Source: Styela clava (taxonomy: Eukaryota). From it: a DNA stretch of 64,000 nt. A program made the translations under genes and the position numbers. Where the stretch lies: positions 13,392,001 to 13,456,000 of the forward strand of contig NC_135257.1 of assembly GCF_964204865.1 (NCBI RefSeq), given 5' to 3'. This document shows, piece by piece, positions 1-62,386 of this stretch; position 1 is the first letter of the stretch, and each line of letters opens with the position of its first letter. The notes below the pieces were generated by a model. It did no database searches, was not told the origin of the DNA, and saw only the letters and a list, made by a program, of their open reading frames with translations.

Positions 1-920
1 GAAACTTTTAGGGTTTGTTGGTAATAACAATTATCTAAATCTACAGCAATTCCCGATATTTTATATTTCTGTTATGAATAGTTTCAACGGAAAGTCTACA
101 CTCTACAGATATTTTAGCAATAATAGTTAAATCGGAAGTGTGCAATTGACATCCTTATTTATTCAAGTGATAGAACAGACTGTCCGTTCACATTTTGCAT
201 TCTGTAGGCCTATATATATTTGTGCACTTGTTGATGTTATATTTTCTAAAGAAGGCAATGTGAATACATAATTTTTTTGTTTATACTGTCTGGCTATGTG
301 GAACATGCATTGTTCCTTGGAAGAGGAGGCAAAATAGATCAATAGATTCACATTTTCAAGAAAATAGTTATTCATTTGTCCTTCATCCAGTCCTTTTACT
401 GTGCAAATATATAAAATTCTATCATATCCCAATTTTTGATGTTTTATCATTGTAGTGCTATTTACACACACTTTTACAATTACAAATATAGGCTTCACTA
501 TATATATATACCGGTACTCTATCTAATGTACTGTGATATCCACCCCCAAAATATCAAACAACTATATTTTTGTTTAAATCTATTAACAATGAACTAAATT
601 TTTATCTTATCTTATCAAATTGTGAAGGATAAAAATGAATTCCTCTAGTTTCAAATTGCAAACAATAGCGTTGAAACATTTGCATCATGTCTTCATTGTA
701 TAATTTATAACTTGAATATAGCACAACATAATAACAATGAAACTGAAAGAGACATGGCATAAGACCTAATATTATATATATAAAAGTACTCCAGTAGTTT
801 TCTTACTGTTTTTATTTTTTTCTAGAATATAATAGTTGTACTAAATAGTATACTGCAGTATTATAATTCTTTTTAAATAGATATTTGTTCATCGTTATAC
901 CTCAGTATTGAATGATCTTG

Positions 921-2492
921 TCACTTCAAACTTTCCATCAACTCTGGATTTTCAACCGTTTTGGAAGGATAAAGTTGTACAATGATTCCTTTCTCAATGA
1001 GTTTGTTCCACATTAAACTAATTTGATGAATAGTTGGATTCAGGGTTGGAAATGCCACCCAGACAACCCATTCATCTGAAAAGATATTGATCCGATATCA
1101 ATACTGATATAAATCGCTCTAGGAATCTACACATATTCAATTGGTTTGTGTCACTTTTTTGAAATTTTGAAAGATTCGTTGTCTTATGTATAGCCTGGAG
1201 AGGAAAAAATAGTTTAGTCCGGTATTGCAGTTTTATAGTTGGTTGCTTTTCCCCCAATTTCCTTATGTGCAATGTGGTGCTACCTCCACTGGTGAGCAGG
1301 CATTCCTTGTGAATGAACGTCCTTGAATGTTTTTAAGTGGGTGATTTTAATTACTTACCGTACTCTTGAGTGAGTTTAATCCCTTATATTGTGAGTTCTA
1401 CCAATGCTACTGAGAGTAAATTGTCATTGAAACTAAATGAAAAGCGGAATAAAATACCTGAAAGACTGCAGAATGCATTGACCAAAAAATTCTTTTCGTC
1501 ACATAGAGCCAGAATATCACCATTGAATAAGGCATCATCTGAATATTAAAATGTTTTAACTTTTTGATTGTCAATGTATTTTACCATTGCCAATTTAATC
1601 TGTAAATTTAATTATACATTACCTATTTTTTTCGCTTTATCATTTGTTCCTCCATCTGGTGTTAGAGTGTGAGAAGCCAAAGCAGCTGGTTCTGTATCAA
1701 AATATTGAATTTTTTATTTCATTTTACCTATATAGGTATATTTAAAAATAATACCTTCACTCATTTCCCCATAATAAACGCCGTCTCTTCGTTTGGTCGT
1801 ATGACTTGTAAAGGTTTGGGGAGGAGAACTGAAATAAAGTAAAATGTACAATTACATATCTTCTGGTTTTGAATGCAGCTTTGTTTGGGTTGGACACTGA
1901 ATAGTCTGATCTTTCAATTCAAATGTAACTAAATTCACTTGTATACTTTAGTTTAAATATTGCAGTGTTAAATCATTGCTTCGTTTTTTTTTCAACTCTT
2001 TTCAATTTCTTTGAAATATATTATAAACATACTTCTCATGTAAATCAGTATGCACCATTCGCATTCCTTCATTTGTATTGGAGATATTCCGTAATCTTAC
2101 ACCTATAACATCTTCTTTCATGATCTCATCGTTGGTGTGTAGCACCAAGTACCAGTCATTCTTTACCTGCGCACAATAATAAGAAAGCCGAGTTCAGTGA
2201 AGATGTTGAAATCTCCAGATATACCATTGGGAGTATGGGAGATGAATGTATTTGAAGTCCTAATGTTGTTTTAATCAAGTTTTTGAAAAAAAGTGTAAGC
2301 GGATAATGAATGTTTCATATATATTAAAGATTGATTGAAGGTTAGGGCTTTACTATTTAATTATATACATACTTTATCCCAGTCGATATCTTCATTGTTC
2401 TCTGGAATTTTACATTTTTTTGCCTGGTTAATCTCGATGCCTATAGCAAGCATCAAAAGTGAAATACGCAATATGTTCTTCATGGTCATCAT
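921..2492 (-). CDS. Secreted lipocalin-like protein, array copy A (6 exons, 210 aa)
   Basis: Manual splicing: exons 2492-2373, 2166-2033, 1828-1755, 1691-1623, 1538-1458, 1075-921; all GT-AG, phases 0,2,1,1,1, open frame of 633 nt. Protein MMTMKNILRISLLMLAIGIEINQA-KKCKIPENNEDIDWDK|VKNDWYLVLHTND...LALCDEKNFLVNAFCSLS|DEWVVWVAFPTLNP...MESLK*. It has a signal peptide and an SCR1-like DWDK-x(4)-WY motif, and is colinear exon by exon with the canonical lipocalin at 43465-45489. Confidence 0.85.
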
Positions 2493-4641
2493 TTTATTTT
2501 AAAGCTGCTAAATCTTAGTTTTAAAAACCACAATTTTATGTACTTTCCTAACCCTGAAAACTTTTAAAGTTTATTGGTGAATTATCCAAATTTACAGCAA
2601 TTTGTGAGATTTCAGAATTAGATTATGAATAATTGAATCGAAAAGTCAATAGATACTGTAGCAATAATATTTGAATCGGAAGAGTGCAATTGACATCCTT
2701 ATTTATCCAAGTCATAGAACAGACTGTCTGTTACAGGTCTTGCATTCTGTACATATATTGGTGTTGTGAAGATGTTAAAGTTCCTGAAGAAGGCAGTGTG
2801 AAACGAGTATCGTATTTTTTTGTTTTGTTTATACTGTCTGGCTATGTGGAACATGCATTGTTACTTGTAAGAGGAGGCTAAAGAGATCAATAGATTCACA
2901 TTTTCAAGAAAATGTTTATTCATTTGTCATTCATTCGATCCTTTTTCTGTACAAATTCGTAGAATTCTATTATATCCTAATTTTTGATGTTTTATCATTG
3001 TAGTGCTATTTACACACACTTATACATTTACAAATATAAGCTTTAATAGATATATATATATGTATACTATATCTAATGTACTGTGATTTCCACCCCAAAA
3101 ATATCAAACAACAATTCAGTATCAGTAAGTCTGCTATTTTTGAAAATATTATTCTTCTGTATGCACAGTACCATAATATTGGGTTTGAACTGCAAATTCT
3201 TTTTCTTTGTCCACTACCTACTTGTATCTTACCCACAAGGAAACTTTAAGGACATGATTGAATGACAGTGGCAATTTTTTTCAACTATCGGTGACCAAAA
3301 TATTTGACCTAACGTGTGCCGGTTTTGGACAATATGACAACTTATTGTAGACATGAAATTTGAAAAATACTTAATCTATTGGAATGGCAGAATAAATATG
3401 GCATAATGCATTGTTTAATTGTTTTACAATATACTTTGCCATTTTTTTAAAAGGCGTAAGTTAATTCGAATAAATCACAAACAATATTAAATCTTAGGTT
3501 CTAACATCGACATCTGGTTTTTGGTTTACATCCATTTATCAGGTCAACTCATAGGGTGCGAAAAATCATGAAATGTAAAAGAAACATGATGCGTTTGTCA
3601 AAAACTGAAGGTTTTTGCAATTAGAAAACGCCAGTAATTTTTGTGTGCTAACTAGATCATAAAACTGAAAATGCAAAAATGATGCAATAACGAGTCTTCG
3701 CAGTGACATATTCATCACTGTCCTAGTTCTGATTATGCCGACTACATTTACGGTGCTTGGTGCCTACTACTTTTATGTGTGCTTTGCAATCGAACGCAAG
3801 TATAACCTAACAAGAAAGATTCAGACGCAAGAGAAACTGCTTTTCTATGAATATTAAATTAGATATCCAAATTACAAAAATCGCCACATGGTGCGAAGAT
3901 GCATAAACTGAATTGCAGTAACAGATCCCCCAGATTCAGTTATTCGAATTGTCCGTTCCTAGTCAAGTCACTGCAATAAGATAAAAAAAAAAGGGAGTGG
4001 AATATTTATGTCCATCTCATGTTGGCTGTGCAACAAAGCCTTTTACTCAACTATATAGCATTAGCATATTAATATGAGGCAGACACAAGCAGAAAGACAA
4101 AAAGACTTCGATGAGAGAGGAGGCAGAAAGGGAACAATAGATTCACGTTTCCATGAACATGTTAATACATTTAGGGGCTTCATCCATCTTTTTTTGTACA
4201 AACATTTAAATTCTATCATATCTAGTGTTTTGAACATGTGTTTTTGATATACTGATATACTTCATATGTGTTTAATTGTACTTTACAGGATTTTATTACA
4301 GATCTTGAGATTTTTCAAACACTGATAACGAATTCCCAAGGTCGCAACAATAAGTATCAAAACTAAATACAATTAGGCATGTTTATCTCATATTTTTATG
4401 TTAATGGATTGACGTGGTATTTTAGAGTAGTAATGTTCTTATTTTGGCGCAAAAACCGCGAGTTAAGTTGGCCACAATTATATTGATATAGAAATGAATT
4501 TTAGATTCTCGTAGCTGTCATGAATTGAATATGTTACGCGACAAAAAAGTCGATATGCGCTGAAATAGTCGGCTATTTTAACGAGCTCGTAATTGCGTCG
4601 ACTGTTTCAGAAGGAAATGGGAATTTCCGTTTTTGAAAATT

Positions 4642-4677
4642 GAGTGAAATAAACCTTATAATTGTCAAGGTTAGCAT
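4642..4677 (-). pseudogene. 5' remnant of a lipocalin array copy (ATG and ~12 codons; gene body lost)
   Basis: Reverse strand reads ATG CTA ACC TTG ACA ATT ATA AGG TTT ATT TCA CTC, matching the start of exon 1 (copy D: MLTLKNITFISL). It is followed on + by the conserved upstream block (4680-5240). Exons 2-6 are absent from 3110-4640. Confidence 0.65.
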
Positions 4678-5622
4678 TATATTTTAAGGCTGCTGAAACT
4701 TAGTTATGAAAACTACAGAATTACATCTTTTATAACCCCGAAAATTCTAGGGTTGGTTGGTGAGTTATCCAAATCTATAGCAATTCATGATATTTTATAA
4801 TTCTGTTATGAATAGTTTCAACGAAAAGTCTGCACTCTACAGATATTCTAGCAATAATAGTTAAATCGGAAGTGTGCAATTGACATTCCTACTTATCCAA
4901 GTCATAGAACAGACTGTCTGTTCATGTTTTGCATTCTTTACATATATTTGTGCACTTGATGTTATATTTTTTGAAGGAGACAATGTGAAAACATATTTTT
5001 TTTTGTTTATACCGTCTGGCTATGTGGAACATGCATTGTTCCATGGAAGAGGAGGCAAAAGAGATCAAGAATATGTTTATTCATTTGTGCTTCATCCAAT
5101 CCTTTTTTTGTACAAATATTTAGAATTCTATCATATTCTAATTTTTGATGTTTTATCATTGTAGTGCTATTTACACACACTCATACAATTACAAATAGAG
5201 GCTTCACTATGTATATATATACTCTATCTAATGTACTGTGATATCCACCCCCAAAATATCAAACAACTATATTTTTGTTGAAATCTATTAACAATGAACT
5301 AAATTTTTATCTTATCTCATCAAATTGTGAAGGATAAAAATGAATTCCTCCGGTTTCAAATTGCAAACAATAGCGTTGAAACATTTGCATCATGTCTTCA
5401 TTGTATAATTTACAACTTGAATATAACACAACATAATAACAATGAAACTGAAAGAGACATGGCATAATACCTAAAATTCTATATAAAAGTACTCCAGTAG
5501 TTTTCTTACTGTCTTTATTTTTTTTAGAATATAATAGTTGTACTAAATAGTATACTGCAGTATTATAATTCTTATTAAATAGATCTGTGTTCATCGTTAT
5601 AACTCAGTATTGAATGATCTTG

Positions 5623-7285
5623 TCACTTCAAACTCTCCATCAACTCTGGATGTGCAACCGTTTTAGAAGGATAAAGTTGTACAACGATTCCTTTCTCAAT
5701 GAGTTTGTTCCACATTAAACTAATTTGATGAATAGTTGGATTCAGGGTTGGAAATGCCACCCAGACAACCCATTCATCTGAAAAGATATTGATCCGATAT
5801 GAATACTGATATAAATCGCTCTAGGAATCTACACATATTCAATTGGTTTGTGTCACTTTTTTGAAATTTTGAAAGATTTGTTGTCTTATGTATAGCCTGG
5901 AGAGGAAAAAATAGTTTAGTAGGGTATTGCAGTTTTATAGTTGGTTGCTTTTCCCCCAATTTCCTTACATGCAATGTGGTGCTACCTCCACTGGTGAGCA
6001 GGCATTCCTTGTGAATGAACCTCCTTGAATGTTTTTAAGTGAGTGATTTTAATTACTTACGGTACTCTTGAGTGAGTTTAATCCCTTATATTGTGAGTTC
6101 TACCAATGCTACTGAGAGTAAATTGTCATTGAAACTAAATGAAAAGTGGCATAAAATACCTGAAAGACTGCAGAATGCATTGACCAAAAAATTCTTTTCG
6201 TCACATAGAGCCAGAATATCACCATTGAATAAGGCATCATCTGAATATTAAAATGTTTTAACTTTTTGATTGTCAATGTATTTTACCATTGCCAATTTAA
6301 TCTGTAAATTTAATTATACATTAGGTACCTATTTTTTTCGCTTTATCATTTGTTCCTCCATCTGGAGTTAGAGTGTGTGAAGCCAAAGCAGCTGGTTCTG
6401 TATCAAAATATTGAATTTTTTATTTCATTTTACCTATATAGGTATATTTAGAAATAATACCTTCGCTCTTTTCCCTATGATAAACGCCGTCTCTTCGTTT
6501 GATCCTATGGCTTGTAAAGGTTTGGGGAGGAGAACTGAAATAAAGTAAAATGTACAATTACATATTTTCTGTTTTTAAATGCAGCTTTGATTTGGGTTGA
6601 ACACTGAAATGTCTAATCTTCCAATTCAAATGTAACTGAATTCACTCGTATACTTTAGTTTGAATATTGCAGTGTTAGGTCATTTCTTCAGTTTTTTTTT
6701 ATGAAACTTGTTTCAGGTCATCTGAAATAAATTATAAACTTACTTCTCATGTAATTCAGTAATCACCATTCGCATTCCTTCATTTGTATTGGAGATATTC
6801 CGTAATCTTACACCTATAACATCTTCTTTCATGATCTCATCGTTGGTGTGTAGCACCATATACCAGTCATCCTTAACCTGCACACAACAATTATATGGTT
6901 TGCAATTTCTACTGAATAATTTCATTATGCAATGAGAGTTTTTCTAAATCTCAACTTCTAACACCTGTGACGCATTTGGAAAGTCGAGTTCAGTGAAGAT
7001 GTTGAAATCTCCAGATATATTATTGTGAGATGAATGTATTTGAAGTCCTCATGTTGTCTTAATCAAATTTTTGAAAAAAATGTAAGTGGATAATGAATGT
7101 TCCTTCTATATTGAAAATTGACTGAAGGTACCGGTAAAGGTTTTACTATTTAAATATATACATACCTTATCCCAGTCGATGTCTTCATTGTTCTCAGGAA
7201 TTTTACATTCTTTTGCCTGGTTAATCTCGATGCCTATAGCAAGCATCAAAAGTGAAATATGAAATATGTTTTTCAAGGTCAGCAT
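5623..7285 (-). CDS. Secreted lipocalin-like protein, array copy B (6 exons, 210 aa)
   Basis: ATG at 7285 (MLTLKNIFHISLLMLAIGIEINQAKECKIPENNEDIDWDK), exon 2 VKDDWYMVLHTNDEIMKEDVIG..., TGA at 5623-5625. Same exon structure as copy A and frame intact. Confidence 0.85.
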
Positions 7286-8380
7286 TTTATTTTAAAGCTG
7301 CTAAATAACTTAGTTCTATAAACTACAAAATTATGTACTTTTATAACCCGGCAAACTTTTAGGGTTTGTTGGTGAGTTCTCCAAATTTACAGCAATTTGT
7401 GAGATTTTATAATTCTGTTATAAATAGTTTCAACGAATGGACTATAGATATTTTAGCAATAATATTTAAACCGGAAGTGTTCAATTGACATCCTTACTTA
7501 TCCAAGTCATAGAACAGAGTGTCCGTTCACATTTTGCATTCTGTACATATATTTATGCACTCGATGATGTAATATTTTCCAAAGAAGGCAATGTGAATAC
7601 GTAATTTTTTTGTTTATACTGTCTATTGTGAGATGATATTGTAATGTTTAGTGTCTGTTCACGTTTTGCATCCTGTACATATATTTGTGCACTTGATGAT
7701 GTTATATTTTCTAAAGAAGACTATGTGAATACATGATTTTTTTGTTTATACTGCCTGGCTATGTGGAACATGCATTGTTCCTTGGAAGAGGAGGCAAAAG
7801 AGATCAATAGATTCACATTTTCAAGAATATGTTTATTCATTTGTGCTTCATCCAATCCTTTTTCTGTACATGTAGAATTCTATCATATTCTAATTTTTAA
7901 AGTTTTATCATTGTAGTGCTATTTACTCACATTTATCCAATTACAGATATAAGCTTAAATGAATATATATATATATATACTCTATCTAATGTACTGTGAT
8001 ATCCACCCCCAAAATATCAAACCACTATATTTTTGTTTAAATTTATTAACAATGAAATAAAATCTTTAAATTATCTCATTAAATTAAGGACGATAAAGAT
8101 AAATTCCTCTAGTTCAAAATTGCAAACGATAGCGGTAAAACCTTTGCATCATCTCTTCATTGTATAATTTCCAACCTAAAGATAGCACAACATAATAACA
8201 ATAAAACTGAAAGGGACATGGCATAAGACCTAAAATTCCAACACAAAGTACTTCAGTAGTTTTCTTTCTGTCTTTTTTTTTCTAGAATATAATAGTTGTA
8301 CCGAATAGTATACTGCAGTGTTATAATTTTAAATAAATGGATTTCTGTTCAAGGGGATAACTTAGTATTGAATGATCGTG

Positions 8381-10016
8381 TCACTTCAAACTTTCCATAA
8401 ACTCTGGATGTTCAACAGTTTTAGAAGGATACAGTTGTACAATGATTCCTTTCTCAATGAGCTTGTTCCACATCAAACTAATTTGATGAATAGTTGGATT
8501 CAGGCTTGGAAACGCCACCCAGACAACCCATTCATCTGAAAAGAAATTGCCCCGATATAAATCGCTCTAGGAATATACATATATGCGATTGATTTGTGTC
8601 ACTTTTTTGAAATATTTGTTGTTTTATGTACAGCCTGGAGAGGAAAGCTTAGTCTGGTCCGTTATTGCACTTTTAGTTGGTTGCTTCCCCCCCCCCCCCC
8701 AAGTTCCACCTCACACGCAATGTGATACTACCTTCACTAGTGAGCAGGCATTCCTTGTGAATGAACCTCTCAAGTAACTGATTTTTATTACTTACTAATT
8801 ATATTACTTAGTCTTGAGTGAGTTCAATTTCCTTCATTGTGAGTTCTATCAATGCTACTGAGAGGGAATTGTCATTGAAACTAAATGAAAAGCGGCATAA
8901 AATACCTGAGAGACTGCAGAATGCATAGACCAAATAATTCTTTTCATCACATAGAACCAGATTATCACCATCGAATAAGGCATCATCTGAATATTAAAAT
9001 GTTTTAACTTTTGGAATGTCAATGTATTTACTACCATCATCAATATATTCTGTAAATTCAATTATACATTACCTATTTTTTTAGCTTTATTATTTGTTCT
9101 TCCATCTGGTGTTAGAGTGTGTGAAGCCAAAACAGCTGGTTCTGTATGAAAATAATAAATTTTTTATTTCTTTTTTCATTCCAACTATATAGGTATATTC
9201 AAAAATGATACCTTCGCTCTTTTCCGCAAAATAAACGCCGTCTCTTCGTTTGGTAAAATCGAATGTTAAGGTTTGGGGAGGAGAACTGAAATAAAGTAAA
9301 ATTTACAATTACATATCTGCTGCTCTGATTTGGTTTGGAAACTGAGTATTCTGATCTGTCAATTCAAATGTAACTCAATTCACTTGTATTACTTTAGTCT
9401 GAATATTGCGGACTTTGTGGTGTTAAGTAATTTGTCCAGTTTTATTTTTTGAACTTGTTTCAGGTTATTTCAAATAAATTATAAACTTACTTCTCATGTA
9501 AATCAATAACCACTATTCGCATTCCTTCATTTGTTTTGGTAAAATTCCGGAATTTTGCACCTATAACATCTTTTTTCATGACCTCATCATTAGTGTGTAG
9601 CCCCTGATACCAGTCATTCTTAACCTGCACACAACAATATGGTTTTCAATTTCTACTCAATAATTTCATTATGCACTGCGAGTTTTACCAAATCTCAACT
9701 TCTAACACCTGTGACACATTTGGAAAGTTGAAAGTTTGGAAAGATATATTATTGTGAGATAATTTTCTTGAAGTCCTAATGTTGTCTTAATCAAATTTTT
9801 GAAAAAAGTGTAAGCGGAAAATGAAAAATGTTTCAAATATATTAAAAATTGACTGGAAGTGAAGGTTTTACTATTTCATTATATAGGCCTACATACCTTA
9901 TCCCAGTCGATGTCTTCATTGTTCTCTGGAATTTTACATTCTTTTGCCTGGTTAATCTTGATGCTTATAGCAAGCATCAAAAGTGAAATACACAATATGT
10001 TTTTTAAGGTCTGCAT
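8381..10016 (-). CDS. Secreted lipocalin-like protein, array copy C (6 exons, 210 aa)
   Basis: ATG at 10016 (MQTLKNILCISLLMLAISIKINQAKECK...), exon 2 VKNDWYQGLHTNDEVMKKDVIGAKFRNFTKT..., TGA at 8381-8383. Frame intact. Confidence 0.85.
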
Positions 10017-10983
10017 TTTATTTTAAAGCTGCTAAATCTTAGTTTTAAAAATCACAAAATTATGTACTTTCATAAACCTGAAAACTTTTAAAGTTTGTTG
10101 GTGAGTTATCCAAATTTACAGCAATTTGTGAGATTTCAGAATTAGATTATGAATAATTGCATCGAAAAGTCAATAGCTACTGTAGCAATAATATTTGAAT
10201 CGGAAGAGTGCAATTGACATCCTCACTCATCCAAGTCGTAGAACAGACTGTCTGTTACAAGTCTTTCATTCTGTACATATATTGGTGTTGTGAAGATTTC
10301 ATATTTACCCAAAGAAGGCAGTGGGAAATGAGTATTTATTTTTTGTTTATACTGTCTGGCTGTGTTGAACATGCATTGTTCTTTGGAAGAGGAGGCAGAA
10401 GTGATCAATAGATTCACATTTTCAAGAAAATGTTTATTCATTTGTCATTCATCCAATCATTTTTCTGTACAAATATTTAGAATTCCATCATATATCCTAA
10501 TTTTTGATGTTTTATCATTGAAGTGCTATTACACACACCTATACAATTACAAATATAAGCTTTAATGGATATATATATATATACTCTATTTAATGTACTG
10601 TGATATCCACCCCCAAAATATCAAGCAACTATATTTTTGTTTAAATTTATTAACAATGAATTAAATTTTTATCTTATCTCATCAAATTGTAAAAATTAGA
10701 AATGAATTCCTTTAGTTTAAAATTGCAAACAAGAGCGTTGAAACATTTGCATCATGTCTTCATTGTATAATTTTCAACCTAATTATAGCACAACATAATA
10801 ACAATGAAACTGAAAGATACATGGAATAAGACCTCACATTCTATATAAAAGTACTCGCGTACTTTTCTTACTGTCTTTGTTTTTCTAGAATATAATAGTT
10901 GTACTAAATAATATACTGCAGTGTTATGATTTCTATTGAATGGATTTCTGTTCATGGTTATAACTTAGTATTGAATGATCTTG

Positions 10984-12609
10984 TCAGGTCAAACTTCCAT
11001 CAACTCTGGATGTTCAACAGTTTTTGAAGGATAAAGTTGTACAATGATTCCTTTTTCAATGAGCTTGTTTCACATTAAACTAATTTGATGAAAAGTTGGA
11101 TTCAGGGTTGGAAATTCCGCCCAAACAACCCATTCATCTGAAAAAACATCGAGCTAATATTAGGAATTTACATATATGCAAATGGTTTATGTCACTTGTT
11201 TGAAAGATTTGTTGTCCTATGTACAGCCTGGGAGGGAAAAATAGTCTGGTTAGTTATTGCACTTATAGTTGGTTGCTTTCCCCCTAATTTCCACCTCACA
11301 TGCAATGTGATACTACCTTCACTAGTGAGCAGGCATTTTTTGTGACTGTACCTACCAAGTGACTGATTTTTATTACCCACTAATTATAAAACTTACTCTT
11401 GAGTGAGTTTAATTCCCTCTATTGTGAGTTCTATCAATGCTGCTGAGAGCAAATTGTCATTGAAACTAAATGAAAAGTGGCGTAAAATACCTGAAAGACT
11501 GCAGAATGCATAGACCAAATAATTCTTTTTATCACATAGAGCCAGAATATCACCATTGAAAAGGCGTCATCTGAATATTAAAATGTTTCAACTTTTTGAA
11601 TGTCAATGTATCCATCACCATTCACCAATCTAATATACAAATTCAATTATACATTACCTATTTTTTAGCATTATTATTTGTTCCTCCTTCTGGTGTTAGA
11701 GTGTGTGAAGCCGAAACAGCTGGTTCTGTTTCAAAATATTGAATTCTTTATTTATTTTCGTTACATTTTAACTATATAGGTATATTTAAAAATGATACCT
11801 TCGCTCTTTTTTCCGTAATAAACGCCGTCTCTTCGTTTGGATGATTCGATTGTAAAGGTTTGGGGAGGAGAACTGAAATTAAGTAAAATGTACAATTACA
11901 TATCTTCTATTTTTGAATGCAGCTATGATTTTGGTTGGACACTTGAGTAGTATGATCTGCCAATTCGAATGTACGGTAACTGAATTCACTTGTATACTTT
12001 AGTTTGAATATTGCAGTGTTAGGTCATTTCTTCAGTTTCTTGTTTCAGGTCATCGGAAATATTTTATAAACTTACTTCTCATGTAATTCAGTAATCACCA
12101 TTCGCATTCCTTCATTTGTTTTGGAGATATTCCGTAATCTTACACCTATAACATCTTTTTTCATGACCTCATCATTGGTGTGTAGCACCATATACCAGTC
12201 ATCCTTAACCTGCACACAACAATTATATGGTTTACAATTTCTACTGAATAATTTCATTATGCAATGAGAGTTTTGCTAAATTTCAACTTTTAACACCTGT
12301 GACACATTTGGAAAGTCGAGTTCAGGGAAGATGTTGAAATCTCCAGATATATTATTGTGAGATGGATGTATTTGAAGTCCTAATGTTGTCTTAATCAAAT
12401 TTTTGAAAAAAGTCTAAGCGAATAATGAATGTTGTATTTATTTTAAAAATTGATTGATTGAAGGTTTTACTATTTAATTATATACCTACCTTATCCCAGT
12501 CGATGTCTTCATTGTTTTCTGGAATTTTACATTCTTTTGCCTGGTTAATCTCAATGCTTATAGCAAGCATCAAAAGTGAAATAAATGTTATGTTTTTCAA
12601 GGTTAGCAT
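10984..12609 (-). pseudogene. Lipocalin array copy D, probable pseudogene
   Basis: Exons 1-3 are intact. Relative to copies A-C there is a 1-nt deletion in exon 4 (6 vs 7 T at ~11661), a 1-nt deletion in exon 5 (~11560), TGG->TGA at 11070-11072 in the ancestral frame, and a further 1-nt deletion near the stop. Confidence 0.8.
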
Positions 12610-12674
12610 TTGTTTTAAAGCTGCTAAATTCTAGTTCTATCAACTATAAAATTAAATATTTTCATACCCTAGTT

Positions 12675-13525
12675 CAGTGGTCTTCAAACTTTTTGAGACA
12701 CGACCCCATCTACAATATTATTACGTATGATAAGCACTCGCATCCCGAGTTATATACATATATATGTTCACCTACAGACACGAAAAAAATATTTATCAAA
12801 TTCGGAAATTTATTAAAAGAACCCAACAACAACCATATTTATTCAGTGTGAAGAATGCGACTGCTTCTTTCCAACGAGATCTTGCATTCGTGGCTTAATG
12901 TTGCTTAAGGTCAAACGCAAATCCTGTTCTACGTTTAATCGATTTCGGTGCTTTGATTTAGGCAGACTCATAGCACTAAAAGTCAAGCTTTCAAAAAGAT
13001 TGATCATACGATATTTTTCTTTTATGTTTATCAGCCATTTAATAAATTGTAATTATCAATATGACGGTAGGCTGGAAAATGAGGCTTTGCAGTAAAAGCA
13101 ACGGCCACTGTACAGTACATTTAAGACACAATAACGATTTACTTTAAAATATAAATTACTGTCGTTAAGCAATAGCCTTTTTATAAAAGAAGTCACTCCA
13201 ATTCGAAATATTGAAACTTGCTAGCCTATGTAGCGTTATTCAACTTAACAGTGCAGACTACACGCTGTTGTGTATTTGTGTCATAGAACGCTGTTTTTCA
13301 CACGGACTAAATTTGTGATTATGATGTCATAATTGATTTATCGTAATTGCTCTTGGTATTACCTGCTTGTTATTCATATTTTTGCTTGAAGTATCTAGCG
13401 TTTAGCCGAGAAGTCACACACATAATAAAAATAATAAAAGAAATGACAACGATGGGCACTCGGCACCCCAGAAATATATAAGGCGACCCCACTTGGGGTC
13501 GCGACCCACACTTTGGTGACCACTG
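12675..13525 (-). mobile_element. Non-autonomous hAT (Buster/Charlie-type) element with a transposase C-terminal remnant
   Basis: TIRs CAGTGGTCTTCAAAC / CTTTGGTGACCACTG; perfect 8-bp TSD CCCTAGTT (12667-12674, 13526-13533) with central TA. The minus strand at ~12990-12844 encodes ...FSAMSLPKSKHRNRLNVEQDLRLTLSNIKPRMQDLVGKKQSHSSH*, typical of Buster/ZBED5/SCAND3 transposase C-termini. Confidence 0.9.
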
Positions 13526-15911
13526 CCCTAGTTGATTGTGATATTTCAGAATTATTTTATGCATATTCGCAATGTCTAAAAAAGTTTATACACATACTGT
13601 AGAAATACTATTCAAATCGGAAGAGTGCAATTGACATCCCTATATATCCAAGTCCTAGTACAGACTGTCCGTTACAAGTTTTGCATTCTGTACATATAAT
13701 TGTGCACTTGATGACGTTATATTTTATAAGAAAGCAGTGTGAAATAAGTATTTTTTTGTTTATATTGTCTGGCTATGGGGAACATGCAAAAGAGATCAAT
13801 AGATTCACATTTCCAAGAATATGTATATTCATATGTGCTACATCTACCGTAATTCTTTCCTGTACAAGTATGTAATTTAATCGTATCCCAATTTTCAATG
13901 TTTCATCATTGCAGTGCTATTTCTTAGGGATGGGACGAGATTCGGACTCGAATTTCGAGTCCACGTCATTTTTACTGAGTTCCGATTCAATTCTCTTTTT
14001 ATTGATTGACGCTTGGGTTATGCGAGTTCACCTTCATAAAAGTCAGTATATGCAATATTTGAATGAAAAAATGTGAATCTTCACTTAAGCTCTCTAAAAA
14101 TATTGTACATGTCGTATCACAGGCTCTTATCAGACAAATTTAATTCATTTCATCGCTAATGACCACATACCACATTAACCAATAAATTACTCTTCGCACA
14201 CAAAATAGAAAGTGGAGCACCCCAAGGGAAATTCTATTAACACTATTTCCAAGTACAGCGCGTTCCATTTTGCTGTAAACACCTTTAAATCGGTGTTATG
14301 ATAATTCCTTTTTTGTACTTGCACGTAACGTGAGAGTCATTATATAATCATAGGTGATGAGATAAATAAAGGGGTGAATTTGCAAGCCAAATTTTCCACT
14401 TTGAAAAGCGTTATTATAAAATACTAACTAAAATGAAAAATTATCGTTTTATTTAAAAAAGGAATTTTTTGAGGTTTTACACCATATTAACTAATATTTC
14501 AGTGTAGTGTAGTTTACAGGCTTCAGAAAGCAATGACTTGTACCAACTGTATCATAAAATGACTTGATCACCTGTCTGTGTGTGCAGATGTACATGGGTA
14601 CAATTGAACTGGGTCAAATTTAAATGAGGGAAAATGTCAGCAGGTGCATATGTATGTCTGTGCAAATGTCTGCTGGTGCGAATACCTATGGGTGCAAACA
14701 ATCATGAATGCAAATGTCTGTGAGTGCAATCTTATATGGGTGTTAATGTGTTTGTTCAATTGTCAATGGATGAGAATGTCCGCAGGTACAAAAGTATAGA
14801 ATGTCCGCAGGTACAAAAGTATACAGTTGCTGTTGTTCTAGGTGCAGTTAATGGTACCGATATAAGTATGTGGGTGCAAAGCTTTTTTTTTGGTATAATA
14901 ACCATTTTGGGTAAATGATGTTATTTTGTGATGAAATGTTTAAGAAAATATTACAAAAGATGTACCGTAATATCATTTTTGTTTATACTTGCAAAATATG
15001 TGGCAAAATCTCTATGACATACCGGTAATAGCATGGTGATCATAAAGCTGACCCCTGAAGTAATCAATAAATTTGGGAAGCTCTTTGTTGTTAATTTGAT
15101 TTGTGTATCTAAAAGACTTTAATACTTCCTTGTGCACTTCATGATTATTGCATCTCAGTTGTTGGAATTTTATCTTATACCCAATCTGATATTTTTATTT
15201 TTTATAAATGCAAGATTATGAAAATCTTTTGACTTTCTTATTTTTTTTAAGTCAACTTCTCTACATCTACTTTCAACTATCCTTCTAAAGAAGTATTCAC
15301 ATAAACTTTGAATTTTCAAGTTATTTGTAGCTTCACTATATTCATCCATGATAATGTAGTTGAATATCACCTGCCCACTAAATATTATATTGCCTCGAAA
15401 ATACATATTAAAGTTTGGATATTTTTGCCTATCTCTAGCTAGGAAACTTTTGCCATTTCCAAAACTCATCTTCATATTTTAGCCTACCTATTTCAACTAA
15501 ATAACTTTTGCCACTCCCATATTATCTCATCTCCCATCATTTGCGGGAATATAATTGAAATGACAAATATTGATTTTCTATTTAAATATGTCGCCTGTGA
15601 TAAATACCATTATGGAATTTAAAAAGAAAATATTTTCTCTGACAAACATACACCTTGTTCTATGATTGTGTTGCGTAATCTATTTTCATTTTAAGCTCAA
15701 AAATGTACTTTAATGGTCATTATTCAAGGAAAAACTTTCTACAAATTTGATTATCCGAAGCAATAAATTTTTGAACTTGTTTCAATTATGATAATCATAT
15801 TATTAAACATTAGAGCGCAATTGTGAATACAGTTAAAATAGTAAATTTCACCAAATTTCTGTTTCCTAATTTACGAAAAATGTGGATTATAATGAATTAC
15901 TTTGCTTACAG

Positions 15912-22216: not shown

Positions 22217-24407
22217 CAGGGTTGTCCAAAATGAATCGAATATCATAGTATTCGAATACCTTTTCGGCTGATTTTCGAAAAAATTCGAATAGTAGCCACT
22301 TTTCGCCGTAAACGTGGTGTTTCGTTTTACGGGAATCTTCGAACGACTTTTTACGCTGTCTCACGTATTGTAATGACGATGAAATAGAATCGGCACTTTG
22401 ATTGTTTATATTCTGTGCGATCGTACGTCGCATAGTGTTGCGACACATTTGCACGTTTGCGTGGGTGGACATTGCCGACATTCGTCTACGAGGCTTTTAA
22501 TTTACAAATTCATTTCCTTCACGTCGAAAAATTGACAATTACCGCTTTTCTATGCCCAATTTTTTGGCCTGATTTTTTTTTGGAGGGCGTCTAATTGAGA
22601 AAGTATGTTTATTTTATTTCTATGTGGCCTGCTTATTAGTCTTCTCAAGCATGATTTGTGTAACCTTATATTTGGGTCTTAGGGTCTGCCAATCATGATA
22701 TTTAATCGCAGGCCGGTTATCGTTACTTTAAAGAGAAACATGGCCACCGAGTGAAAGTGATTTGTGACCCTTTCGTTTTGCCGATTCAGCAGAACACGAC
22801 AGGGACAGGAAAACACAGCTGTGAAATAACCCGTGGACGTACAGTGTAGTACTTATCACATTTCAAAATTATTTTAACATTCGGGTTAATAGGTTGTCCA
22901 AAATGATTGCCGCTTTACAACTTAAATTTACCGCTCAATTGTTAAAAATAGTTAATTCTGTGAGTATGATTCTACCAAACTAACATGATCTGGTTCTAAG
23001 CATAAAATTATTAGCGCATATCACAGGGACACATTTTTCTACCAGTCTTATTGGAGGCCTATATGGAAAAAAAACTTTTTTGAGTGCTAAAAATAGACAT
23101 CGTCCTATTTGCCATGTGGACTTATTAGCCGGGAATGACGGTATTTATAGCCGTCATTGTTACGATATCCAATAAATTGGCACAAGTTGGAAAAACAAGT
23201 TGATTTATTAGAAAATAATTTCTGGCAAATAATTCTGATAACGATAGTTAAAAGTATCGATCCTTTACCAGGATGATTTTTTGTTGCGCAAAATAATCCA
23301 ATCCTTGACTTGTACCAGCATTTAAAATGTCATGTCGTATTAATTTAATTCCGTTCAACGTAACTCATTGTTGTATGGACAATCTGTGGACATAAAATGT
23401 GTGGTAAACTGACCGATATTATTAAATATTGATTCCTATTTTCATATTGAGAAAATAATGAAAGTATTAATACCAAATACCACGGGTATTTGTGGACATG
23501 AAATACGTGGTAAACTGCCCAATTATATTTAATTTTGGATTCGTATTTACAAAATAATAGAACTATTATAATTCTAAAATGCAACGGCGATCTGTGGCCT
23601 TAAAATGTGTGGTAAACTGCCCGATTTACCAACATTTGAGTTATGATTATAGAACTAAATTAACACGGTAAGGCATTTTAAATAGTGGTATCGGTCATGG
23701 ATTCGAATATTTTACGCAGCACAAAATCATCCTAGTAAAAAGTCCATACTTTTAAATACAAATCAATGGCAACCATTATCCAAATTAGTTCCCAAAAAGC
23801 GGGATAAAGTATAAATTCTTTCTCCGACTTGTGACAATTTTTTCGTGAGTGCGAAAATAAGAATCAAGAACTAATTATATTCGGCACAATATCACGGCAA
23901 TCTGTGGACATAAATTGTGTGGCAAACTCGCGATTAATATTAATTTTTGATTCCTATTTTTGTATTTACAAAATACAACGGCGATCTGTGGACTTAGAAA
24001 AGTCGGAAAAATAACTTATACTTTATCCCGCTTTTTGGCAAATAGTTTGGATAATGGTTGATATTTAAAAGTATGGGCGTTTTACTAGGATGATTTTGTG
24101 TTGCGCAAATATTCAAATCCATCACCGATACCACTATTGCCGTATTAATTTAATTCTGTTAACATGACTCAAGGTATATAAAATATATAATGCAATAATC
24201 TGCAAATATGAAATGCCTGGTAATATAACTAGGTTGTAACTTGTAGATAGCAGTTATTCCATCGCTTATTGTATGGAAATTCCTACATACATTTAGATAA
24301 GCTTCAATTAGTGAATTTTATTTTCGAAGTATTCGAAATTTCATATTCGAAAAAAATAATTTCGAATGTATTCGAAATAGTGAACTATTCGGTATTGGCC
24401 ATCCCTG
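22217..24407. mobile_element. Non-autonomous hAT-like element, 2.2 kb
   Basis: Imperfect TIRs CAGGGTTGTCCAA / TTGGCCATCCCTG; perfect 8-bp TSD TCTACAAT (22209-22216, 24408-24415); subterminal TTCGAAT repeats; internal inverted repeat ~23650-23830 vs ~23995-24160; no transposase ORF. Confidence 0.88.
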
Positions 24408-37100: not shown

Positions 37101-38231
37101 AATAAGCAAATTTCGTACGGTACAAACAAATAGAAAAATTTCAATTTCTTGTTGCATTTTGTCATAAAATACTATTATCGGGAATTATGATTATCGCCAG
37201 ATATAGGTAGATTCCGGTTTTATTTTAAAGTCTTTCCCCCCGGTAAATTTTTTTTTATTTTTCACTATTTGTAAGATAATTCACTATATAATATATTAAG
37301 CAAATTTCGTGATGTACAAATTAATAGAAAAGTTTCAATTCTTTATTGCATTTTGTCATAAAATATCATTGTCGAGAAATAGGATTATCTTTATACATAG
37401 GTAGATTCTTTTTTTTATTCCAAAGTCTTTCCCCCCGGTAGAATTTTTCGTTATTTGTTGGATAATTGGATATATAATGTAATAAGTCGATTTCATGGCG
37501 TACAAAGTATTAGAAGTGCCGAAATCAGACTTCAAAGCCATCAAGACAATGTATCTCTTTGGGTAAATGTTACTTAATTTGCTTTTGAATTTGCTTGTTC
37601 AATCTTTATTTTGAAAGATGTATTTGTGCGAATCAGATTCGATTTGTTCATACCTCATTCTTATTGATGGAAATGAATAGGTTTGATATTTCGCTTAGAT
37701 ATAAATTTTTTTTGTTATGAAACCTTCCTGTGAATTCATGCTTGTCCACCTATATATCTGGCAACAGTGATTAGAGATATCATAGTTCAGCTGATTTTGA
37801 TTCATTTTCCCGGCAATTGTGGCTATTTTGTGCCATCAATTGCCGGACTTTGAGAGGTTCTGGCGCTGAGTTAAACATGGATATATGTAATTTAGTAATC
37901 TGTGAACGTTTAGGATGCCTTAACTTACGGTGAAACATTGTCAGAACGTCAGCCCTTACTCGTGTGACGCTAGCCCACACTCGTGGGATGCCAGCCCACA
38001 CTCGTGTGACGCTAGCCCACACTTGTGTGACGCTGGCCCACACTCGTTTTTGTCAGGCCATACTAGGGGTAACTGGGCCGTGCTTGGTATTGTATTTGCG
38101 TTGTGTATATCAGATATGGTCTCTATATTGTCAGAGTCACCAAGTTTTTATGTAATTACGTTTATAAAGTCAGTAAAATAGTTGGTTAACCCTTTGACGT
38201 CAGGCTGAGTGTGGGCTGGGGTAACTTTGGT
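34118..38231. mobile_element. Foldback/Mutator-like non-autonomous element (4.1 kb, very long TIRs, 9-bp TSD)
   Basis: Ends ACCAAAGTTACC... / ...GGTAACTTTGGT; TSD GGCTGAAGT at 34109-34117 and 38232-38240; ~780-bp unique inverted arms (mirrored ORF pairs 34188/37930 and 34326/37780) containing ~21-bp subrepeats (CACACGAGTGTGGGC...). Confidence 0.9.
34900..37450. repeat. ~194-bp satellite inside the Foldback-like element; orientation flips at ~35340
   Basis: CGTGATGTACAAA recurs at ~35367, 35560, 35753, 35948, 36141 ... 37308 (about 11 units). About 2.5 units lie in the opposite orientation at 34900-35340. Confidence 0.92.
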
Positions 38232-38437: not shown

Positions 38438-38674
38438 GTCTCGTGTAGTTTCGTACCTAACGTACTTCTAGTGTGCGTAGCATAACAATTTTTCCACGTA
38501 TCAATCCTAACCCCAACCTGACTGCTTGTTGGGATATGTTTGTAATTTTTATAACAAATTGAGTAACTGTATACTTCTTGCTGCCCGGTTTTATCTGGGA
38601 GTTACAATTGACATATCAAAAAATTGTTATGCTACGCCCACTAGAAGTACGTTAGGTACGAAACTACACGAGAC
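38438..38674. repeat. Inverted repeat / MITE-like structure (~56-bp arms)
   Basis: GTCTCGTGTAGTTTCGTACCTAACGTACTTCTAGTG..CATAACAATTTTT (38438-38493) vs its reverse complement (38619-38674). The same motif recurs at ~62765-62805. Confidence 0.7.
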
Positions 38675-41069
38675 CCCGCTTTTCTACTGTACCGGTACTG
38701 TAAAGATATAATGCTTCTTTTCCGAATAGTCTACCATAGGCTTATATACTTCGTTTGACATTCCCTGTCAATATATTTGATGATTGCTCTCTTGTTTTGA
38801 TCAGCACACAAAACTTCAAAGTGAATAAACGAATAAAGCTCACAGAAATTTGTAAGTAATACTGTTATAGAAATTGCTTTTGTATCCTCTAAACCAGTGG
38901 TTCCCAAACTGTGGGTCGCGACCCCCGATGGGGTCGCGTGAAGATTTTCTGGGGCCGCCTAATGTCTTCCAAACATGCGCACACAAGAGACTAAGATTTT
39001 GAATTTGGAAAATCAGATTTGAACTGCTCGGCAGATACCATAAAAATGCTTAACTTCGGATTTTTCAGCAATAACTCGACCATTTATTGTCCAAACGGCC
39101 CCAAATTTGATCGGTAAAACTTTCATGCGGTACCTTTCCAGTTGGTCGGCAGCAAAGTGATTAGAGTTTTTCGTAACGACGCAAAGTACAATTAGGCATT
39201 GACGTTCAGGCGACGTTGTTCTGCGGAACGTTGTAAATTACGCAATCGCGAATTTTGTCGTTCACAGCTGGAGTTCCAATTATATCAGTATTGTAGCATC
39301 GGCCGCGGTTTAAATAATACCTGCTTTAAACGTATGCTTTAGGACGGTTAATGATGTTCTACACTTACCAGGGTAAGTGATAAGTATTTTTCATAAGGAA
39401 CGCAGAGCTGCTACGTTGCAACACTTTGGTCGCAACGTAATTGCGAAAGATCGCTGCGTAACGAAGTAATTAAGGAACGTCGCTGTTTAACTCAAGTTTG
39501 CGCAGCGGACATATGAAGAATTGGAGAACATTGAATAAAATAGAGTATACAATTTTACTGGTGTACGATAAATTCAATCTAATGATACTATTCGAAAGCT
39601 ATTTTTAATCTCTACAAATGTCAAACTTACAAAAGTATATGTGTCGATATCATATTAGATTAAAACAAGAACAAATCGGAGGTTTTGTCATTTAATTGGA
39701 AAGTTTTTCAAAAAAATTCACGCTTCCAATTTCGCCGATTTTTGTACGATAATCGGGACATTTTATCCCCATCTCATAATTATAATTAGTCTCCTAGATT
39801 GTCTCTCAAACAATATAAAACTTGTCTAAATATAATGTAAGGTTAGTGAGATATGAGGTTTCGAAGTTGCATAACTCACACGCGATACCTGTAGTAAGAT
39901 AACTATCGCGCGATTCGATGGACACATAATGGCGTCCGATATGCATCATCGCACACGGTGTCCCCACTTGGTTTCTGGTCACTTTGGTCGGCAGGTACCG
40001 GCATTAGTAAATGTAATTGAGTGACAATGGTACGAGTGCCAATATTATTTTATAGCTCTTTTGATCATGTTACATCCCAATGAGTAGTTGACCCGATGGT
40101 ACGCGAATCGGATTTTTATTAGGCTGAGAGAAATTATATTGATTTGTGATTTTGTACCAGTGTAGCCGCTTGGTCACCGAAAATACAAAACAAATTGCTT
40201 TATCCGGCGATTGGACCTTGATCAGGTGTTTGGCAAGTATGGTATTGATTGACAGGCGGGGTCTTGACCAAAGTGAATATAGTCACTTTGGTCTTGACCG
40301 AGTAAATATGAACCTTTAGGTTTCGATCCGTTGCGAGAGCGCTTTGTTAATTCGCGCACGTGTCTAAAATCTACGAGTAGGCTACGTGTTTCGTCCACAC
40401 TGCCTCAACATGAAGGTGAACATTTTCGTATTGTAACATTACGTATTTAGACGTTTCATACAAAATTATGAAGCGTTCCGAGCAGTCAAACACAAAACCA
40501 CAAGTTCTAGCATAATGAGGGAACTTAAAAGATGGGATTCCATACGCTGTTTTTCCTATTTTACATTCATGCTCTGTTTTACTTTCGAATTAATGATTGA
40601 AAAAAAAAATTTAAGAAAAAATAATATGTTAATATAGAACTAAAAATAACAAAGACGCTCGCTGTTGGAATATACTGAATAGGATTTCGAGTTATTGTAT
40701 ATTTAGAAACAACCTTACTATTTCCGAATATCGTACGCGTCCTTACAATCTACCACATTTTATCAAGTACACTAATTCCAATCTAACAGATTATCACACC
40801 GTGGTTTTCATACGATTCCATGTGTTATCAAATCTTCTGAGGTTTCCCCGTTTGGAACGTCTACTTGCAGTCGATAAACAGCAGGTACATTGTGATTAAA
40901 CTTATAATATGTTGATTTTTGAAGTTGCTGAACGTTTCTAGTGGGGTCGCGAGTATCTGTAAGCTTTGATTCTATAAAAATTGGGGTCGCGAAAAAAAAA
41001 GTCATCTGCTTTCCATTGAAATGAGGGAGCTTATGAATATTTAGAGAAATTGATAACGGCACATTATCA

Positions 41070-41262: not shown

Positions 41263-41357
41263 TTTAAACATCCAAACAAAAGTTTTGTATTTGAACTTAA
41301 TTTACCACAATTATCTTTTTACTTTTTAGATAGATAATACAGCGATATTGGACGTCT

Positions 41358-60323: not shown

Positions 60324-60413
60324 AATGCTTTATTGATAAAATTAGTTCAACAGTATTTATAAAATATAAAAAAAAAAATGAATGGCTGAGTATTGAACTG
60401 TCACTGACATAAC

Positions 60414-60760: not shown

Positions 60761-60819
60761 AACTGAAAGAGATTCCAGTTTAAATGAAGATGGATGGCTT
60801 AAACTTGTATATGCCGATT

Positions 60820-62386
60820 TCCACGCTTTGTCGCGTAATGCAATGGTGGTGAAATAGTATCGACACTTTGATTGTTCATTATCTTCTGTGCGAGCGTGCG
60901 CCCTTATTGTTGCGACACATTTGCATGGTCGCAAGATTGGCACTATCGCCATCCCCTTGCAATGCTTCTAATTTACGGATTCATTTGTATTAAGTCAAGG
61001 AAGTCACATAAATACAAATAGTCAGATAATAAATAAGTTAAATAAAGTCGTGCACTTTGTTACAAATTACAACACCCAATAAATTGTCTCATGTCTTAAA
61101 AAACGAGTTGATTTATTGGAAAAAATCCTTTAAACATTTTCACACTTTTGGCAAATACCGTATTTTGATAATGATAGTCAAAAGTATCGACTTTTTATTA
61201 TGATGATTTTCCGTTGCGACAAAATATTCAAATTCATGAACAATAACAGCATTTAAAATGCCTTGTCGTATTAATTTAATTTTGTTTAATAATTAACCTA
61301 ACTCGTGGTTGCGTCAACTAACGAAAAAATAAAAGTATTACCGACAATCTGCAGCATTGAATGGTGTGGTGCACTGGCCAATTATAATTAATTTTTTAAA
61401 CCTATTACAGTACTTACGAAAAACAAATATTGATACAACTCCAAAATACCACGGCAATCTGTGGACATAAAATGTGTGGTTGACTGCCCGATTAGAATTA
61501 ACTTTGATTTATTAATTCGTACTCACGGAAAAATAATAATTTTGATAATGATAGTTGAAAGTATGGACTTTTAACTAAGATGATTATATGTTGCAAAATA
61601 TTCAAATCCATGACCGACAACAGCATTTAAAATGACTTATTGTTATTGTATTAATTTAATTGTTTTTAACGTAACACATAGTTTTGCAGACTCGCGAATA
61701 AATTAATGCATTACTACTCTAAGATACGGCGACCATCTGTGAACATAAAATGTGTGGTAACTGCTTGATTATAATTACAAAATACAAAAGCATTACAACT
61801 TTAAAATAACGCGGTATCTGTAGAAATATAATGTGTGGTAAAATGCTGGATTATAATTAATTTTTGATTCACACTTTCGTACTCACAAAAAAATAATTTA
61901 TACCTTTACCCACTTTCGGCAAATAGTTTTGATAATGATTGTTAAAAGTATGGAATTATCGGTTGTGCAAAGTATTTACCGTAAATCCATGACTGATAAC
62001 AGCATTTAAAATGCCTTCGTATTAATTTACTTTTGTTCGATGTAGCCTAACTCATCAATGCCTCGTCTTACGAAGAATAAAATGTTTCAAAATACCACAG
62101 CAATCAAAAACACAAAACTAATGGTAAACTGCCCTATTATAATTAATTTTGATTCGCACTCTCGTACTTACGAAAATAAAAAGGGCATACTACTATAAAA
62201 TATCACGGCAATCGGCGGATATAAATTTTCTGGTAGCCAGCTTGTAGGTAACGGTAATTCCATTGTTTATTGTATGCTAATTCCGCCATAAAGATAAGCT
62301 TGCATTTATTTTCGAAGTATTCGAAACTTAAATAATAATTTTGAATGTATTCGAAATAGTAAATTATTCGGTATTGGCCATCCCTG
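60820..62386. mobile_element. Second, left-truncated copy of the 22217-24407 hAT-like family, with a ~360-380-bp internal tandem repeat
   Basis: Same right end (TTCGAAATAGT.AA.TATTCGGTATTGGCCATCCCTG) and matching left-interior motif (GTTGCGACACATTTGCA). TTTTGATAATGAT..AAAAGTAT recurs at ~61163, 61540 and 61927. Confidence 0.75.

Follow-up and report, generated by a model that had tools for sequence, protein, structure and literature searches.

Which process inserts a few letters between two TA dinucleotides, repeatedly and in the same handful of forms? The question is raised by a window of 64,000 nt from the Styela clava genome—AT-rich (GC 0.29–0.37), drawn from an assembly of 377 Mb, and understood here as the whole stretch of DNA analysed—in which sister copies of a tandemly duplicated gene differ by micro-insertions of the form TA-X-TA. 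The initial annotation had interpreted these words as excision footprints of transposons, and our analysis supports that interpretation. The micro-insertions are very probably the scars left by cut-and-paste transposons of the pogo superfamily and by their non-autonomous derivatives. The mechanism itself is an ordinary, textbook one; what looks new is the particular transposon family of Styela, the extent to which scars have accumulated and the fact that they stack.

The paralogous units of the window, labelled A to D, offer the most direct view of these insertions. Each unit is about 2.6 kb long, carries a signal-peptide exon near its right end on the minus strand and shares 83–93% identity with the others, as determined by self-BLAST. 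The four copies were aligned with MAFFT, and a mechanical census of insertions and deletions was made on the resulting alignment. Among the 27 one-copy insertions detected, six measured 4–6 nt, and in five of these six a TA had become TA+X+TA, with X being GG, CGG, CCGG, GGCC and again GGCC; the remaining insertion of this size is located at a unit end, where homology stops. The units and the motif sites are as follows.

31–12720, minus strand: four tandem paralogous gene units, A (31–2579), B (4765–7381), C (7382–10105) and D (10106–12720).
205–212: TAGGCCTA in copy A, against TA and then CATATA in B, C and D; a 6-nt one-copy insertion with one neighbouring substitution.
509–516: TACCGGTA in copy A, within a (TA)n run; CCGG stands opposite TATA in the sister copies, and insertion is one reading of an ambiguous alignment.
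1356–1362: TACCGTA in copy A, sharing its site with position 6058 of copy B.
6058–6064: TACGGTA in copy B, with middle letter G against C in copy A (1356).
6322–6327: TAGGTA in copy B, against one TA in A, C and D; a clean one-copy insertion of 4 nt.
7129–7136: TACCGGTA in copy B; a clean 6-nt one-copy insertion, where the sister copies have TT or TG and the ancestral form was presumably TA.
9884–9891: TAGGCCTA in copy C, against one TA in A, B and D; a clean one-copy insertion of 6 nt.
11972–11978: TACGGTA in copy D, against one TA in A, B and C; a clean one-copy insertion of 5 nt.
15020–15027, and starts at 31942, 32292, 33773, 38690 and 63738: six further TACCGGTA sites, the flanks of which are all unrelated.
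34126–34132: TACCGTA in the left arm of a foldback element; in the arm alignment, the right arm (reverse complement near 38225) has TA.
61977–61983: TACCGTA at a place with no sister copy, so that an insertion origin cannot be judged.

All motif positions reported by the initial annotation were correct, i.e., those of TAGGCCTA (205 and 9884), TACCGGTA (509 and 7129), TACCGTA (1356, 34126 and 61977), TACGGTA (6058 and 11972) and TAGGTA (6322). Its central observation, that sister copies have a single TA where one copy has TA, 2–4 further letters and TA, is clean at 6322, 9884, 11972 and 205 and likely at 7129, but ambiguous at 509. At the site shared by 1356 and 6058, the proposed CCG in copy A and CGG in copy B were both recovered; the plain TA attributed to copy D is less straightforward, as copies C and D bear a different, additional 11-nt stretch there. 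The differing middle letters are compatible with separate excisions in the two copies once these had duplicated, and also with a substitution that came later. The restriction of TACCGTA to the left foldback arm was likewise borne out by the alignment of the two arms. Taken across the four sister copies, parsimony derives the long form from a single TA at the four clean sites and, probably, at 7129, and the foldback arms add a further case. Two of the scars, 6322–6327 and 9884–9891, lie within the first 13 letters of an intron when read on the minus strand, directly after the GT, with the scar at 6322 occupying nt 4–7 of its intron. Here, GTAATG of copy B has become GTACCTAATG and GTATGTATAT of copy C has become GTATGTAGGCCTATAT—changes that might affect the splicing of these two copies.

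These alignments also bear on the idea that TACCGGTA and its relatives are functional motifs, e.g., protein-binding sites in promoters, which were kept or created by selection and are not scars at all. We regard this explanation as scarcely credible. In the paralogues, the motifs arise as whole 4–6-nt insertions at TA and not via substitution, and they are found in intronic and intergenic DNA of copies that are otherwise drifting. Moreover, the graded series of 4-, 3- and 2-letter forms suits the joining of DNA ends and not a binding site. The one feature in favour of a functional role, the clustering of TACCGGTA sites, is taken up below with the distances between them.

The same words were then counted beyond the window. 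Genome-wide counts over the 377 Mb were compared with those of a control word, consisting of the same letters in reversed order, and a Markov model was applied to a sample of 12 loci of 10 kb each, placed at fixed positions on ten other chromosomes (120 kb in total, or 184 kb together with the window). TACCGGTA occurs at 30,656 sites in the genome, against 4,861 for the reversed word—an excess of about 6-fold. In the 12 loci, 18 occurrences were counted on both strands where the Markov model expects 1.8–2.0, making TACCGGTA the top-ranked of all 256 TA-N4-TA words, and with the window included the count rises to 34 against 3.2 expected. Extrapolation from this small-sample model gives about 3,000 expected sites genome-wide and, correspondingly, an excess of roughly 10-fold. 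None of the 16 listed TACCGGTA sites shares related flanks with another, save for two adjacent sites in locus L011, and the word is therefore not part of one repeat family. TAGGCCTA was found at 9,691 genome sites, against 2,702 for its reversed word (3.6-fold). As for the three-letter forms, in the 12 loci TACCGTA/TACGGTA leads the 64 TA-N3-TA words with 22 occurrences against about 9 (8.8) expected, followed in second place by TAGGCTA/TAGCCTA with 16 against about 7 (6.7). Overall, TACCGTA/TACGGTA is enriched about 2- to 2.5-fold over the Markov model, and extrapolation from the same small sample yields some 13,800 expected TACCGTA sites per strand genome-wide, i.e., a 1.9-fold excess or thereabouts. 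CpG is not depleted in the loci and the window, with an observed/expected ratio of 0.93.

Since both TACCGGTA and TAGGCCTA are palindromic, and the TACCGGTA site at 509 in copy A lies within a (TA)n run, a process independent of transposons has to be weighed at this point, namely mutation at TA sites—through replication slippage or palindrome-forming repair in TA-rich DNA—that seeds and expands units of the CCGGTA type. We hold such an origin to be very improbable. Other palindromes with this composition show no enrichment in the 12 loci (TACGCGTA, 0 against 1.7 expected; TAGCGCTA, 4 against 1.1–1.5), and the non-palindromic TACCGTA and TAGGTA are found as clean insertions. Furthermore, slippage needs a starting unit, and it leaves unexplained why CC, GG, CCG, CGG and GGCC match the ends of TA-flanked elements residing in this genome.

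As for these elements, the initial annotation had named Tc1, mariner and pogo transposons as the agents and had predicted families with CCG..CGG and GGC..GCC termini. Profile searches of the genome returned 126 matches to DDE_1 (pogo-type), 2 to DDE_3 (Tc1) and 3 to Transposase_1 (mariner). The pogo part of the proposal stands, and Tc1 and mariner proper, nearly absent and with no mariner locus having CCG or GGC ends, were rejected as agents. Twelve loci were inspected from the 126 DDE_1 matches. Three of them (L032, L033 and L034) contain elements of 2,214–2,321 bp that are flanked by TA on both sides, start with CCGTATTTTCCGGCGAATAAGAC and have perfect inverted ends of 25 nt. The three copies are mutually 98.8–99.1% alike, and two of them have an intact open reading frame (ORF) of 440 amino acids (aa) with the Pfam domains BrkDBD (E = 7.6e-10), HTH_Tnp_Tc5 (E = 1.4e-12) and DDE_1 (E = 7.9e-27). 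In L033, the ORF occupies 1309–2631 on the minus strand. Its catalytic residues D281 and D317 are separated by 35 residues, the spacing denoted DD35D. In the text of PMC7386202, DD35D together with BrkDBD and HTH_Tnp_Tc5 defines the Passer family of the pogo superfamily; the description in the text of PMC9976928 adds TA duplications, inverted ends shorter than 30 bp and transposases of 400–500 aa. The autonomous Styela element, TA-CCGTATTTTCCGG...-TA, has TA on both sides, ends of <30 bp, an ORF within 400–500 aa and a length within 1.6–4 kb. Judged by its domains, catalytic spacing, ends and size, it is a Passer-type transposon of the pogo superfamily, and the 440-aa transposase with copies about 99% alike marks it as a candidate active element.

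Short derivatives with the same kind of ends accompany the autonomous copies. A scan of the sample for inverted ends revealed a 452-bp element (L011:6745-7200) that starts with CCGTATTTCCCGGCGAATAA, lies between two TAs and has 20 of 20 complementary end letters. Its 20-nt end has 397+422 genome matches at ≤2 mismatches, against 0 for the control, and a DNA search with the entire element gave 731 first-look candidates, 40 of which were scored and showed 82–90% identity. A second pogo family, represented by L030 and L031, starts with CCGTATTT as well. Across L011, L018 and L030–L034, TA adjoins 12 of the 13 recognised ends of CCG...CGG elements. The predicted CCG..CGG transposons are thus present in this genome, as a TA-flanked Passer-type pogo element with short derivatives. 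The window itself contains one degenerate element end.

23121–23143, minus strand: CCGTATTTCCCGG family, one degenerate end of an old copy with TA directly after it; 3 mismatches, with none expected by chance; other end not found.

Locus L018 (on C5), with a pair of CCG ends 3.6 kb apart, was considered as an autonomous copy and rejected, being a short derivative with another element nested in it and having no ORF longer than 103 aa. The nested element belongs to the second predicted class. It is 2,945 bp long, runs from GGCCGCGAGCCGAGGCC to GGCCTCGGCTCGCGGCC between two TAs and sits at a TA of the CCG-family copy. The end of this family occurs 223+219 times in the genome in exact form, mostly as pairs about 2.93 kb apart, and TA precedes 221+216 of these exact ends (437 of 442). 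In addition, two adjoining copies on C1 have one TA in common. A TA-flanked GGCC...GGCC family of 2.9 kb therefore exists, in agreement with the predicted GGC..GCC elements. Two further candidates connected with it were discarded: the 403-aa pogo frame of L036 lacks these ends and does not resemble the L018 copy, which disqualifies it as the partner of the GGCC family, and the TAGGCTA at 7008 of L011, tried as the scar of the nested element, is the family's own sequence next to the target TA.

How would such elements give rise to the observed words? Pogo-type elements would insert at TA and duplicate it. On excision, the transposase would make staggered cuts, exactly at the edge of the element for the 3' ends and a few letters further in for the 5' ends; in Tc1/mariner-type enzymes, the 3' cut falls at the boundary and the 5' cut 2–3 letters inside. 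Each flank would then be left with TA plus the first 2–3 letters of the element. With CC(G)...(C)GG ends, end joining with both 2-nt tails kept would produce TA-CC-GG-TA; annealing of 3-nt tails with a central mismatch, or the loss of one letter, would produce TA-C(C/G)G-TA; and the loss of one tail would produce TA-GG-TA or TA-CC-TA. With GGC...GCC ends, the products would be TAGGCCTA and TAG(G/C)CTA. The strings expected under this scheme are the strings inserted in the paralogues and the top-ranked words of the sample, and the inserted letters match the terminal letters of resident TA-flanked elements. An excess of CCGCGG was also considered, as the product of two fully kept 3-nt tails (TACCGCGGTA), and was rejected: all 23 of the 23 sample sites lie in other contexts, mostly in a GGCCCGCGG repeat.

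The footprints could also be real and yet stem mostly from CC...GG-ended families other than the Passer-type CCGTATTT elements, such as the 126-bp CCAGGTTAGGG short elements or the CCTAACG, CCAAGATGG and CCATTCC families—an attribution we consider unlikely, but deserving of weight. Our scan of the 184 kb revealed five different TA-flanked inverted-repeat families starting with CC, among which the 126-bp family is frequent enough to raise GGTTAGG into the top group of enriched 7-mers in the sample. A 4-letter scar made of CC and GG cannot discriminate among such families, and TACCGGTA is not assignable to one of them because several TA-flanked families in this genome start with CC. The 3-letter scar C(C/G)G is more telling: it needs G/C as third letter, which suits CCG ends and not CCA, CCT or CCAA, and the C(C/G)G forms are precisely the most enriched TA-N3-TA words. 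As a separate observation, the 126-bp short element, seen as TA-CCAGGTTAGGGTTAGGCCAT...-TA in L006, L007 and L016, is very frequent and has mariner-like CCAGGT ends.

The scars are neither isolated nor evenly spread. The double scar TACCGGTACCGGTA occurs at 1,090 genome sites, against 5 for the control, and the mixed chain TAGGCCTACCGGTA at 43+46 sites, against 1+1. TA makes up 0.085 of positions in the 12 loci, and about 0.1% of TAs bear a CCGG scar; by our own arithmetic, independent placement would yield some 29 TACCGGTACCGGTA chains (about 37-fold fewer than observed) and some 19 mixed chains, against 89 observed (about 5-fold). On C1, 99 consecutive gaps between TACCGGTA sites were measured over the first 1.3 Mb; 14 of them are ≤100 bp, where 0.76 are expected, and the five clustered places inspected contain mixed stacks, e.g., TAGGTACCGGTA and TACGGTACCGTA. 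The clustering is what a functional motif would have in its favour, but it is equally expected from local hopping or from a transposon preference for open chromatin. Mixed chains, in turn, cannot come from slippage of one unit, which speaks against mutation independent of transposons and points to the same places having been used more than once. The homogeneous chain exceeds expectation far more strongly—37-fold against 5-fold—which suggests that slippage or a same-family preference adds to it, and some slippage of the unit is indeed probable.

Under the excision model, repeated insertion and excision at both TAs of an older scar would produce such stacked scars. Tentatively, and with more doubt than conviction, we extend the model to a self-feeding process in which pogo-type excision might be the main source of 4–6-nt insertions and the TAs of scars, being preferred targets, might draw in further insertions and excisions, building up stacks and (CCGGTA)n arrays at hot spots, maybe including the 5' regions of genes. 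The share of scars among the 4–6-nt insertions of the paralogues, the number of TACCGGTA sites, the double and mixed double scars and the short-range clustering speak for it. Plain regional hot spots combined with slippage are the alternative to such a preference for scars.

Several results weigh against reading the micro-insertions as excision scars, or narrow the ground on which that reading stands. No occurrence of TAGGCCTA was found in the 12 loci, against 1.9 expected, and its excess depends on the genome count alone. TACCGTA, with 25,896 forward and 26,328 reverse occurrences genome-wide, does not outnumber its reversed word (27,164 and 27,458), and its enrichment depends on the Markov model derived from the 120–184 kb sample; the reversed-word control lacks an excess here because ATGCCAT is Markov-expected 2.4 times as often as TACCGTA. 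TAGGTA/TACCTA is barely enriched outside the window, at 56 occurrences against 44–53 expected in the 12 loci. Accordingly, the k-mer enrichment foreseen in the initial annotation came out strong for TACCGGTA, clear across the genome for TAGGCCTA and divided for TACCGTA/TACGGTA, which exceeds the Markov expectation about twofold but not its reversed word. In addition, the polarity of the insertions rests on parsimony among the paralogues, and a pairwise census of insertions and deletions across 251 kb, where paralogous alignments outside the window were few, yielded no CCGG, CGG or GGCC insertion beyond those of the window. For the GGCC-ended family, no transposase was found in the nested L018 copy or by comparison with L036, and the TA beside its ends could belong to the element itself instead of being a duplication. 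Moreover, within the 251 kb examined, no site was found in both the element-filled and the scarred state, for which reason we infer excision, rather than another process, as the maker of each scar; the size of the stagger is inferred as well.

Variation among animals was examined by mapping contigs from three runs of one sample, together with raw Hi-C reads of a second sample, to positions 9300–15290 of the window; these data represent only one or two individuals, with a raw-read depth below 1x in most unique bins. Among the nine small indels of 1–2 nt found in this interval in the one or two individuals, none was of the scar kind, and no variation was seen, at this low depth, at the six motif sites 9884, 11972, 13222, 13845, 14963 and 15020. 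The contigs cross 13845, 14963 and 15020, and a contig of run X1 covers 14571–15177, all without gaps. Since contigs and reads show no indel at the motif sites, the scars of this interval are present in the sampled animal or animals. A further feature of the mapping concerns the gene units rather than the scars: contigs of all three runs link 9548 to 12171 via 37 other letters, a junction that could represent a haplotype or a paralogous array shorter by one unit, i.e., copy-number variation of the gene units.

Other TA-flanked elements and pogo-type loci were encountered in the window and in the loci inspected. One of them is a short inverted-repeat element of the window.

38454–38658: 201-bp element, TA-CCTAACGTACTTCTAGTG...-TA, with 19 of 20 terminal letters complementary and CC...GG ends.

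This element (within 38440–38675) lies in the TA at the centre of a perfect palindrome, CTCGTGTAGTTTCG-TA-CGAAACTACACGAG. The CGAAACTACACGAG half recurs near 4880 of L011, after a TACCGGTA stack, and may be the end of a further TA-flanked family. At the end of unit D, an element of about 930 bp (12660–13600) has inverted ends of the type ...TTCAGTGGTCTTCAAACTTTTTGAGACA and a contig depth 10–50 times that of its flanks, and is therefore a member of a high-copy family; a similar end (CAGTGGTTCTCAAACT) adjoins the Passer-type copy in L032. The foldback element (34151–38218) has arms of about 1.2 kb, 93% alike, around some 11 copies of a 193-bp tandem repeat (35333–37448). The repeat unit at 37116 reads TACCGTACG where the others read TACATCACG, a change of equal length. 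Among the pogo-type loci, L019 (C19:5175291-5178491) encodes an intact 565-aa transposase with a PHD-like zinc finger at its end (weak Pfam match, E ~1e-3); its inverted ends of about 26 nt start with TAGTAGGTCGGGG, and an identical-scoring match exists on C14. The 403-aa DDE_1 frame forms six repeats on C6 (21824814-21839924) with an exact spacing of 2,937 bp, has identical matches on seven other chromosomes and, in L036, is one of two frames (315 and 403 aa) into which the coding part is divided. These 2,937-bp repeats could be either a tandem transposon array or a transposon-derived gene family.

The scars of Styela follow a logic familiar from Tc1-type transposons. The footprint of Sleeping Beauty is TAC(A/T)GTA, with an ambiguous middle letter arising from 3-nt tails that pair with a central mismatch, and the footprints of Tc1 and Tc3 in Caenorhabditis elegans consist of the TA duplication plus 2–3 terminal letters per end. 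TAC(C/G)GTA would be the Styela analogue, with both alternatives present at one site in copies A and B. Those elements begin with CAG, whereas the Styela elements begin with CCG or GGC, and, unlike in Tc1-type systems, DDE_3 is nearly absent from the Styela genome. The closer likeness is to Passer, a family for which the text of PMC9976928 reports footprints of 0–4 bp and which, according to the same text, already serves as a gene-transfer tool in vertebrate cells. The Styela elements resemble it in their 25-nt inverted ends, TA flanks and length of 2.2–2.3 kb, and the scars fall within the 0–4 bp size range—a likeness judged on the family descriptions. The texts of PMC7386202 and PMC9976928, the species tables of which stand in supplements outside this check, mention neither tunicates nor ascidians nor Ciona, and no description of a genome-wide scar load of the kind seen here was found in them. 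Genome-wide surveys of DNA-transposon excision in plants, e.g., the comparison of Asian and African rice (PMC4423477), likewise treat excisions as small sequence changes that can be measured across a whole genome. That survey sets two species side by side; here, the signal appears within one genome, as a word excess combined with alignments of paralogues. Our literature search, which extended to texts but not to supplements, found no account of such a TA-flanked footprint signature in a tunicate.

Cut-and-paste transposons are usually counted by the copies that remain, and in Styela the copies that have departed become visible as a word signature. Most of the mid-sized insertions that separate these young gene duplicates are scars, some of them only a few letters away from splice sites. 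The scars thereby make it possible to gauge directly how active in excision a transposon family of a chordate relative has been over its lifetime, and they also give access to how often excision alters genes and regulatory DNA and, through their stacking and clustering, to target choice. If excision does feed itself in this manner, it would constitute a transposon-driven route to new short palindromic sequence, and even to microsatellites.

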